Both the position numbers and the translations under genes were made by a program. DNA of 63,442 bases, filler included, from Reticulomyxa filosa (lineage: Eukaryota; Protista; Foraminifera), in NCBI GenBank assembly GCA_000512085.1. It is 18 parts of 18 records of this genome, joined end to end, with 100 filler letters (N's around TTAATTAATTAA, not from the genome) between each part and the next. Parts side by side here need not be neighbours in the genome. Positions count along the whole stretch, not along the records: positions 50,049 to 51,869 come from ASPP01019035.1; 17 more parts are not named here. One strand, 5' to 3'. Positions 49,798 through 53,499 of the stretch are shown here, piece by piece; the stretch's first letter is position 1; each line of letters opens with the position of its first letter. Under the pieces are notes generated by a model. The model had not been told where the DNA came from. It saw only the letters and a program-made list of their open reading frames with translations, and made no database searches.

Positions 49798-50110
49798 TGC
49801 TGCAGCGAGTTTCCAGCGTAATGACAACAGTAACAGCAACGGCAGCAGTAGAAATATCGATTGTTGCAATAAATGAAAATAAAACTGGCAACCTCATGAT
49901 CGACTTGTTGCTGCTGAAAACTCAATTTGTCGTCGAGTCATGAAAGTCNNNNNNNNNNNNNNNNNNNNNNNNNNNNNNNNNNNNNNNNNNNNTTAATTAA
50001 TTAANNNNNNNNNNNNNNNNNNNNNNNNNNNNNNNNNNNNNNNNNNNNTCCTTTTTTTTTTTTAATTGTCGTTAATATGATGATATGTTTTATATTGTTG
50101 AATAATTAGA

Positions 50111-50729
50111 CTAATGGAACCACCAAACCAGATTTGACATTAACATCCGTAACCAACTTAACTCATTTTGGATACAAGCTTTTTGCATTGGATGTAAACA
50201 ACGATGGATTTCAGGATCTTGTTATTGGTAATCCAATGTCTTGTCAACAATGGCTAACCGAACAAGAAAAGGATGCGAATGAATTGCAATGTCGACAATG
50301 TGGTAATACGGTGGTGTTCTTAAGTGCAAAGAAATGGTCAAATGTATCGTGGGAACGACAACATCCAATTGTATATGTAAACGAATCTGATGCTATTCTT
50401 ACAAATAATATTGAATTTGAATGGTTTGGTTATCATATTGATATGAATGGGGATAATACCTTATTTATCAGTGCCCCTGGAGCCAGAAATCAACTTTTAA
50501 ATACCACTGGATGCATATATGTTTATGATATTCGTTGTAGTAATAGCAACAATAATTGCACATTTACACTTATTTATAAAATTAATGGTGAACAAAATAT
50601 TGCAAATAGTGATTTTGGATATTTTTTTGCTTTTGGAAATCCCTATGTGGTACAAAACACTGATGCTCATTACAAAGACATTTTAGCGATTGCATCTCCT
50701 AGTGAAACTTTTCATCTTATTAATAGGTG

Positions 50730-50762
<33 letters not shown>

Positions 50763-51343
50763 ATTCTTCTTCAAAATATATATAACAATGCTAACAACAA
50801 ATAATTAGAAGTCACGACATTGATATTAAATCTTTAAATGAAAAAGCTCATGGAGGTGTGGTGAGATTTTTTAATGTCACCAAAATGCTTTCTATGAATG
50901 AAAAATATGCTAATGAATCATTATTGTTGACTTTGGTATGTGATCAAGAATATGCTAGACTTGGTTATTTCACACTATTTAAAGATATCAATGGTGATGC
51001 AATTGATGATATAATCTTGAGTGCTCCCTATTATGTAAATGGTAAATATGATGCAGACAACTATAATATAACATCTGCAAATTTCACTCGAGAAAGTGGA
51101 AGTGTATTTACTTGGTATGGAGGTATGAAAGGTATTTTCCGTAGAGAAGAAAATGATCGTGATAAAGTAGTTTATGATGTTTATAATACTAGTGATTTAA
51201 TGTTTGTTGGAGATATTGATAAATCTTCTAGGCTTGGATTTAAGATTGCTATAAACACAAATAATGTTATGGTGTTTAGTGCTCATCGTGCAACTGTTGA
51301 TGGAAAAGAAATGGCTGGTAAAGTATTTGTTGAACAACTTTAA
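50111..51343 (+). CDS. FG-GAP/integrin-alpha propeller repeats, GPI-phospholipase D (GPLD1)-like C-terminus
   Basis: HFGYKL..LDVNNDGFQDLVIGNP, WFGY..LFISAPG, RLGY..DINGDAIDDIILSAPY, ESGSVF, EMAGKVFV*. One intron at about 50727-50808. Confidence 0.8.
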
Positions 51344-51511
51344 TTCTTCATAAATTGAATATTTGTTTCTTTAAATTTTTGATATAAAAGATTTTTTTTT
51401 TTTGAATTATATAAGTTCTTTCACAAAATAAGTTTTTCAATAAATATTACTCAAGAAATCATTAATTCATTTCGCAAATATAATTATTTTTTATAATAAA
51501 AAAAAATTTAA

Positions 51512-51719
51512 TGTTGCCACCGGGATTCGAACCCGGACAATATCCCTTTCCTGACTTTGACCGGTCAGCCGTTATCCTTAACACTTCACCGTATGTTCAT
51601 CTAACTCGCAGTCCAGTCCAGTAAAGGACCAGTTCTGACACTCTAGCATATTACACACATGCGTCCTGTTAAGTGAGAACCACAACGCGGATATTCAACC
51701 TGAAATTTGTTTTAGCAAC
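51512..51719 (-). ncRNA. 208-nt tRNA-like structured RNA with a 143-nt insert replacing the anticodon loop
   Basis: Acceptor stem GTTGCTA/TGGCAAC plus discriminator A. Perfect T-arm CCGGG-TTCGAAT-CCCGG (B box). Helix AATATCC/GGATATT at the anticodon-stem position. Downstream T-run. Higher GC than the AT-rich flanks. Confidence 0.7.
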
Positions 51720-53499
51720 TTTTTTTTGATAAATATATATATTCAAACTTATATATATACTCAAAAATATTGTTCATATATTACACTTCTTATTATTTTT
51801 TATTATTTTTCATTGAAAATAAAAAATATCAATCAATTATACTTCTACTTCTATTCAATGCAAAAAAAANNNNNNNNNNNNNNNNNNNNNNNNNNNNNNN
51901 NNNNNNNNNNNNNTTAATTAATTAANNNNNNNNNNNNNNNNNNNNNNNNNNNNNNNNNNNNNNNNNNNNTTTTTTTTTTTTTTTTGAAGTGTGGCCTTAT
52001 TACTCAAAAAAAATATGAGTTGTGGTCGAAAGTTCAATTAAGTAGGGATACAAATAAAAAGTTACAAATTTTTATATTTTTTTTAGTGTTAGAATAATGG
52101 TGTTTTGCATATCTGTTAATGCTTTCTTTTTTGTTGTTGTTTTTGTCTTTCATGATAACTATTTCGCTTCTTCCCGTTTCATGAACCTGTCTATTGTTCA
52201 TTTGAAAAAGTAAATAACCAATAGAGTGACTTTCATTGAATTTTTTGAAATTCGGAAAAAGTAAATTGTTATTGTTGCTGGTGTTGTTTCTGAGCGTATT
52301 ACAAAAAAGATCAAGAAATATGTCGACTATATCAAATAAAGGACAACAACAATAACAACGATTGTAATAATAAACAGAAAATTAAAAAGGGATACTCGAT
52401 ATTCGATAATACATTGTTGCAGTCGTCGATCGTGAGGTCGTAATCGAAGACATACGACAGAGCTTGAATTTAGCTCAATTCAGGACACCCGAATTTTAAA
52501 CATTACACATTCCATTTGATTCTGCTCGTAATTGTTCAACTGAACAACATGTTATGAGATCTTTATGTTTGACTTCATCATCTCTATCGCATGCTCTTCT
52601 TTCCTTGTCAACTTCATATCGTATGTGCTCCTTCTCTTCTCTGCTTTTTTCTTGTCCATTTTTAGCTCTTCCTTTTTGTGCAAAGAGCTCTCTTCTGAAA
52701 TTTTCTCTTCCTTCATGTTTTGAGTTAAAGTTAAAAAACTAACAGATCTTGTTGCCGATCTTTAAGTGCTTATCTTGCAAGGGGGCTCTCTATTTTTTTT
52801 AAACATTACAATAGTCAGACAATTTTTGAAAAACTGAACACAAATTCTAAGTACTCTGAAATAAGTTATTCACATTATCATACTAAATTGTTCTTGTATT
52901 GAACAAGTAAATGCTCCGCAATATAAAAAAAACCAACATTGATGAACAAAAGAAACAAACTTTTTTTAAAGCAAAATACGTAACCAAATGAAAAAGCAAA
53001 AATACAATATTATCATTGAAATTCCTGATCATTATAATTTGACCAATAATGAAATAAAAACTTTTTCAGTTAACTGTATTTACTTATTTAAAAGGATTTT
53101 TTTTGCTGTGTTTTCAAAAAAAAAAAACTAACAAAAAAAAATTGTACAGTCCAAAAAAAATGAACATCATCATGTTCTATTTTGACAAAGCTATTCAAGC
53201 AGAAGCTCGAACCAATGGCTAGATCTTCTCATGAATCTTCTGTGTCAGTTACAAAGTCAACTATTTACTGTTTTAGTACGCAAAAACGCAAAAACAAACA
53301 CAAAACTACACACATTTGTTCAATAAAATTTTTTTGAAAAAATCAATACAACAAATTACATCAGCATTCTTCATTAAAACACAAATGTCATTGATCAAAA
53401 CGTACTAGCATATTTTTGAATAAAAATTATTTTTTGTTGAATAACTAATTGTTTAATGAATTAAAAAATCACAAAATTATATTATATATACTAATTGGA

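Follow-up and report, generated by a model that had tools for sequence, protein, structure and literature searches.

The locus and its features

The window, by which we mean the whole stretch of DNA that was analysed (63,442 nt, filler included), holds at positions 50049-51869 the entire 1821-bp contig ASPP01019035.1 of assembly GCA_000512085.1, which belongs to Reticulomyxa filosa, a freshwater foraminifer (PMC7744380). An FG-GAP repeat gene is represented on the plus strand of this contig by its 3' part, and the minus strand carries a 208-nt element (51719-51512), which is convergent with the FG-GAP gene and lies 168 nt beyond its stop codon. The element is known from this single locus on a 1821-bp contig in a fragmented draft assembly. 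Because the adjacent FG-GAP gene has a GT-AG intron, the setting of the locus is nuclear and eukaryotic. The features are listed below by window position, with the two TATA-like runs and the A8 run read directly from the sequence; the element itself is numbered from 1 to 208 along the minus strand.

50110-51343, plus strand: 3' part of the FG-GAP repeat gene (gene model P0001, 383 aa), truncated where the contig ends
50110-50726, plus strand: exon 1 of the FG-GAP gene
50727-50808, plus strand: intron of the FG-GAP gene, GT-AG, 82 nt, 13.3% GC
50809-51343, plus strand: exon 2 of the FG-GAP gene
51748-51759, minus strand: TATA-like run TATATATATAAG, about -40 to -29 relative to the start of the element
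51730-51741, minus strand: second TATA-like run TATATATATTTA, about -22 to -11
51720-51727, minus strand: A8 run after the TATATATATTTA run, abutting the first base of the element
51713-51719, minus strand: acceptor-like stem, 5' strand GTTGCTA (pairing probability 0.82-1.0)
51694-51712, minus strand: 19 nt at the place of tRNA positions 8-26 (element 8-26)
51689-51693, minus strand: anticodon-stem-like helix, 5' strand TATCC, extendable to AATATCC
51546-51688, minus strand: G+U-rich insert of 143 nt, 46.9% GC, in place of the 7-nt anticodon loop
51613-51632, minus strand: predicted apical hairpin of the rod within the insert, CUGGUCC / UUUACU / GGACUGG (p 0.88-1.0)
51541-51545, minus strand: anticodon-stem-like helix, 3' strand GGATA
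51537-51540, minus strand: variable-loop equivalent TTGT, 4 nt
51520-51536, minus strand: T-arm CCGGG / TTCGAAT / CCCGG (p 0.98-1.0)
51523-51533, minus strand: B box GGTTCGAATCC, exact, within the T-arm
51512-51519, minus strand: acceptor-like stem, 3' strand TGGCAAC, plus the discriminator A at 51512
51498-51506, minus strand: T9 run, Pol III terminator-like, after TTAAA and 5 nt past the discriminator

The protein encoded by the FG-GAP gene has, among 1.84 billion representative proteins, a sole close relative, P0003 from Logan run ERR11733786, with which it shares 40% identity; the 1.5-kb contig encoding this nearest relative was found to contain no B box. The intron of the FG-GAP gene holds an unbroken run of about 30 T (50730-50759). 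A weak C/D-box snoRNA-like match with an AUGAUGA box was also noticed on the plus strand at 50072-50137, just upstream of and overlapping the first exon on the contig; it reaches 26 bits with the Rfam family snoR10, whose gathering score is 65 (E 0.81), and is probably spurious.

The original prediction had described the element as a tRNA-shaped unit of the Pol III type in which a structured domain replaces the anticodon loop, and direct reading found in the sequence everything that it had listed of this architecture: the stems and their coordinates, the 19-nt spacing, the 143-nt loop, the 4-nt variable loop, the T-arm and the T-run. The terminal stem (51719-51713/51519-51513) forms 7 of 7 pairs, including one U6.G67. 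With this 7-bp acceptor stem, a 5-bp T-arm bearing a T-loop, and a discriminator base, the element presents several features of a tRNA, and the 5-bp TATCC/GGATA stem, extendable to 7 bp, encloses the 143 nt. In the 19-nt region a degenerate D-arm is possible (CAA / ATTTCAGG / TTG), the GG of which could meet the T-loop; here A8 stands instead of U8, the 3-bp stem contains an A.A mismatch and the GG directly adjoins the stem. The A box is poor, about half of its positions matching TRGCNNAGTGG, and it lies about 170 nt from the B box, while acceptor position 3-70 is U3-A70 instead of G3:U70. The absence of U8, the poor A box and the absence of G3:U70 had each been claimed from the sequence, and each is there.

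The features of a type-2 Pol III gene are likewise present, namely the B box GGTTCGANTCC, a downstream T-run and no internal T4 (direct reading found no run of four or more T inside the element), and together with the terminal 7-bp stem they uphold the description of a tRNA-shaped Pol III-type unit. Judged from its sequence, the TATATATATAAG run is a possible upstream Pol III promoter element, and the TATA-like runs could compensate for the poor A box; since the spacer has only 14% GC, both the TATA-like runs and the T-runs are weak arguments. The B box and the stable fold are confined to the minus strand. It may be noted that, owing to the A8 run at 51720-51727, the opposite strand of the element also ends in a T8 run.

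Within the insert, the heptamer GUUGUGG (51680-51686, minus strand) resembles the 5' acceptor strand GUUGCUA (51713-51719), and it could pair with the same 3' acceptor strand through one mismatch and two G.U pairs. This likeness may point to an alternative pairing or to an old duplication inside the element; no significant direct repeat was found.

Composition and predicted folding

Even with one mismatch allowed, the window contains no B-box match other than this one, against an expectation of 0.04. When the T-arm was held fixed and the 313 nt upstream were shuffled, a 7-bp acceptor partner with at most one G.U pair appeared in 3.8% of the shuffles, and the complete cloverleaf frame (acceptor, 17-21 nt, 5-bp stem and 4-5 nt variable loop) appeared in 0.11% of them. 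The element is moreover a sharply bounded GC island, with 32% GC in its 5' part, 46.9% in the insert and 56% in its 3' part, in surroundings where the spacers have 13-14%, the FG-GAP intron 13.3% and the exons 31-33%, and the boundaries of this island coincide with the ends of the stems. Composition is the main argument for constraint, as the insert at 47% GC stands against non-coding surroundings of about 13% and lies above the exons too, while a neutral tRNA intron or a decaying insert in the R. filosa genome is expected to be AT-rich. A second argument comes from the distribution of the departures from a tRNA, which are confined to the D region and the loop, the stems being perfect (7/7, 5/5 and 5-7 bp); uniform decay would not give perfect stems with only the D region and the loop deviating.

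The minus strand is predicted to fold with -65.7 kcal/mol (z -2.41), as against -42.7 kcal/mol (z -0.65) for the plus strand. Many helices of the minus-strand fold use G.U pairs, and neither a DNA-level inverted repeat nor a terminal inverted repeat was found, so that the structure is specific to RNA of the tRNA-sense strand. A MITE or palindrome insertion was considered and rejected on the same two observations, the G.U-dependence of the rod and the lack of a DNA-level inverted repeat. Taken alone, the insert shows no significant gain in stability over shuffles of its own composition (z -1.27).

For the insert the predicted ensemble favours one long irregular rod (element 37-152), whose helices 47-53/137-143, 61-67/124-130 and 88-94/101-107 have pairing probabilities of 0.78-1.0, most of them at or near 1.0. 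The original prediction had seen several possible hairpins in this loop. The apical one, GGTCC/GGAC, is retained at the tip of the rod, whereas GCGT/ACGC, GCATGT/ATATGC, GTTA/TAAC and CTGAC/GTCAG have pairing probabilities of about zero, and the picture of a multi-hairpin insert has to be given up for that of a single rod. In the minimum free energy (MFE) structure element 10-18, in the D-like region, pairs with 174-183 at 51546-51537 (p 0.7-0.9), which displaces the cloverleaf junction. The cloverleaf junction itself (D stem plus TATCC/GGATA) has a probability of about 0.04, at an energy 3.4 kcal/mol higher than that of the MFE structure, and the D stem alone has a probability of about 0.01. 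A gap of this size could be bridged by tRNA-type tertiary contacts, since the D-like GG faces a consensus T-loop, and either junction may form. The folding tools used are unable to predict pseudoknots, and none is predicted here.

Tests against tRNA genes and known RNA families

ARAGORN, run with and without introns, reported 0 tRNA or tmRNA genes. When an intron-bearing tRNA was sought with introns allowed and thresholds lowered, only spurious long-range calls were obtained, and this candidate was dropped. The Rfam tRNA model scored 13.1 bits against its gathering score of 29, with the T-arm alone aligned. We also removed single stretches of 100-149 nt at every position, and not one of the 3475 resulting constructs was called a tRNA at the default threshold of ARAGORN; at or below 95% of that threshold only malformed models appeared, with anticodon loops of 6 or 8 nt and poor arms. 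In eukaryotic tRNA genes the intron is placed between N37 and N38 and can be as long as 133 nt (PMC10275265). The intron implied here by a 37/38 splice would be about 136 nt, just past that longest known example (PMC10275265), and its removal would leave the loop GCGUUGG, with C33 and not U33 and with G32/G38, the product having the anticodon GUU, G37 and the discriminator A73. The other prefix and suffix combinations of the loop are, by reading, also without U33. Strict bulge-helix-bulge motifs are no more frequent than chance predicts (2 found, against 1.45 expected in shuffles), and neither of the two lies at the 37/38 frame or yields a tRNA. The claim that the element is not an ordinary intron-bearing tRNA thus stood up to the ARAGORN search and to the deletion series, and we conclude that it is not a decoding tRNA.

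One sub-threshold construct deserves mention. Deletion of about 125 nt after nt 7-10 brings together a D-arm GUUA/AGGA/UAAC and the hairpin CUGAC/CGGUCAAA/GUCAG containing UCA, which ARAGORN labelled 'Asp|SeC?' at 95% of its threshold. We rejected this model on account of its loop of 6 or 8 nt, its lack of U33 and its energy, 20 kcal/mol higher than that of the MFE structure. The hairpin (51550-51567, minus strand) has a loop like the anticodon loop of tRNA-Sec (C-N-UCA-AA) with one extra G, a likeness which is probably a coincidence.

The Rfam scan which the original prediction had proposed returned no known family. With Rfam 15 and E values up to 10, applied to the contig and to the element alone, only the T-arm aligned, and no tmRNA, vault, Y, SRP, RNase P/MRP, snRNA or telomerase family was matched; the mascRNA model, with its gathering score of 42.5, reached 17 bits, and that on the T-arm alone. 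Likenesses to SRP RNA, U5, RNase P, a C/D snoRNA and a telomerase template that had been seen by eye were dropped for want of support from any model; in the case of SRP RNA, the AGCA motif of helix 8 is absent and the tip of the rod is a plain loop of 6 nt. Searches for homologues of the element in metagenome contigs, prokaryote genomes, viral contigs and plasmids found none, the phage search gave only T-arm matches to phage tRNAs, and protein searches with the ORFs crossing the element, which would detect copies miscalled as genes, found nothing.

A proposed tRNA-derived gene and its rivals

We tentatively favour, at somewhat less than even confidence, the reading that the element is a tRNA-derived nuclear gene of the Pol III type in R. 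filosa, the tRNA-like half of which would serve as promoter and end-processing signal. Its product, whose transcription, processing and function we infer, would probably be not a decoding tRNA but a structured non-coding RNA about 208 nt long. The intact minihelix of acceptor stem and T-arm (7 + 5 bp, with a consensus T-loop and the discriminator A) would supply the internal B-box promoter and, by analogy with known tRNA-like RNAs, might let RNase P and RNase Z cut the transcript, the CCA-adding enzyme extend it and T-loop modification take place, while the GC-rich rod of about 143 nt in place of the anticodon loop could act as functional cargo, such as a protein-binding arm. A precedent for RNase P and CCA processing exists in the tRNA-like module of YrlA: Mycobacterium smegmatis YrlA, with a 7-bp acceptor stem, is cleaved by RNase P and acquires a CCA (PMC4201824). 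Eukaryotic tRNA-like structures also act as signals for RNase P and RNase Z processing in mascRNA and MEN-beta, although these have a short anticodon-like stem and form the 3'-terminal part of Pol II lncRNAs. If the element is expressed and conserved, it would represent a new reuse of the tRNA processing and recognition machinery, and the first lineage-specific non-coding RNA for the almost unexplored RNA biology of foraminifera.

The serious rival to a functional tRNA-derived gene, doubtful as we consider it, is a relic: a tRNA gene, already dead or dying, in which an insertion broke up the anticodon loop, or a copy of a tRNA-related repeat or SINE-like family, with no function of its own, in which case the element would be ordinary. 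A SINE progenitor was one of the alternatives named in the original prediction. The genome of R. filosa has a repeat content of 30.5% and its assembly is very fragmented (PMC13746701); moreover, the D region and the A box are degenerate, no valid anticodon loop is left and the insert folds no better than shuffles, all of which speak for a relic. The perfect acceptor stem, T-arm, T-loop and enclosing stem, however, argue against general decay; against a relic also stand the 47% GC of the insert in a setting of 13% GC and the absence of an A-rich tail and of a DNA-level terminal inverted repeat, and deletion of the insert does not restore a tRNA. With the element tRNA-derived SINEs share a tRNA-related Pol III unit joined to extra unrelated sequence, but a SINE begins with its head, carrying the A and B boxes in the first ~75 nt, and continues into a body and an A-rich or repeat tail. 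In the element, by contrast, the extra sequence is held between two tRNA halves, the B box is found at the 3' end, and a T-run closes the unit.

A more specific form of the favoured reading, which we regard as unlikely, is a eukaryotic nuclear tRNA mimic with a tmRNA-like topology, its ends made by RNase P and RNase Z and completed with CCA, which is possibly charged or bound by tRNA-handling proteins and carries a functional rod of about 143 nt. In topology the tRNA-like domain of tmRNA is indeed the closest of the known systems. The tmRNAs of bacteria and some organelles share with the element an acceptor stem formed from both ends and set on a T-arm, a degenerate D region, and a long helix with a large domain at the site of the anticodon stem, and the helix 10-18/174-183 of the MFE structure, which begins 2 nt past the acceptor strand, especially recalls a tmRNA. 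The differences are that the element is nuclear and eukaryotic, that it has U3-A70 and not G3:U70, that ARAGORN at its default threshold found neither a tag reading frame nor a tmRNA, and that the Rfam tmRNA models gave no match; the original prediction had said that this was no standard tmRNA, and we agree. A tRNA mimic built into a larger non-coding RNA would be a variant of something known, as tRNA-like modules occur within larger RNAs in bacteria (tmRNA, YrlA), in viruses and in a few Pol II lncRNAs. To our knowledge, no nuclear Pol III gene has been described in which two tRNA halves enclose a large structured domain. If a tRNA mimic of tmRNA-like topology is what the locus encodes, Pol III RNAs would gain a new class, of which a foraminifer has so far given the only example.

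We consider it quite improbable that the element is a true tRNA gene with an intron of about 136 nt, or a tRNA scaffold from which the tRNA splicing endonuclease and ligase would release a stable, possibly circular, intron RNA. Intron-containing eukaryotic tRNA genes have the same gene layout with the insert at the anticodon loop, the cloverleaf spacing is present, and with the known 37/38 site and 133-nt maximum (PMC10275265) the size falls barely past the range; the high GC of the insert would suit a functional intron product. Against this stand the degenerate D-arm and the fact that no tested splice gives a 7-nt loop with U33, the 37/38 product having C33, G32/G38 and the anticodon GUU beside G37 and A73. 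The ARAGORN intron mode was empty, none of the 3475 deletions gave a tRNA at the default threshold, the best of the malformed sub-threshold models lay 20 kcal/mol above the MFE when refolded, and the bulge-helix-bulge motifs occur at the chance rate and yield no tRNA. The GC-rich insert is, in addition, unlike the AT-rich non-coding surroundings.

An RNA subunit of a known kind of RNP with a lineage-specific sequence, most plausibly vault-RNA-like (or Ro/Y-like), is in our view very improbable; a vault/Y-like RNA was also among the alternatives of the original prediction. The sequences of vault RNAs are poorly conserved between lineages, and 208 nt exceeds their typical length. Like tRNA genes, vault RNA genes rely on box A and box B (PMC7904556); they are Pol III genes with tRNA-type internal boxes, a terminal stem, a variable centre and a B box near the 3' end (PMC7904556), and the terminal stem, central variable rod, B-box hairpin and T-run of the element resemble theirs. 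The element differs in its exact tRNA geometry, its poor A box and its length; a T stem stacked on a 7-bp stem, a discriminator and a 4-nt variable loop are not features of vault or Y RNAs, and at E values up to 10 neither the Rfam Vault nor the Y_RNA model matched. In YrlA and those bacterial Y RNAs that have a tRNA-like module, this module (T-arm, D-like loop and acceptor-like stem) likewise sits within a larger non-coding RNA (PMC4201824). YrlA is, however, bacterial, and its ends form the Ro60-binding stem with the tRNA-like part internal, whereas the ends of the element form the acceptor stem, its extra domain is internal and it has no Rfam match. YrlA and vault RNAs are the closest in concept, and the element is assigned to none of tmRNA, YrlA or vault RNA because the defining features of each that were tested fail.

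A chance resemblance or an assembly artefact, which a short contig from a draft assembly with one copy seen might suggest, is hardly credible when the B box was expected 0.04 times in the window, the full frame arose in 0.11% of shuffles and the edges of the GC island fall at the stem ends.
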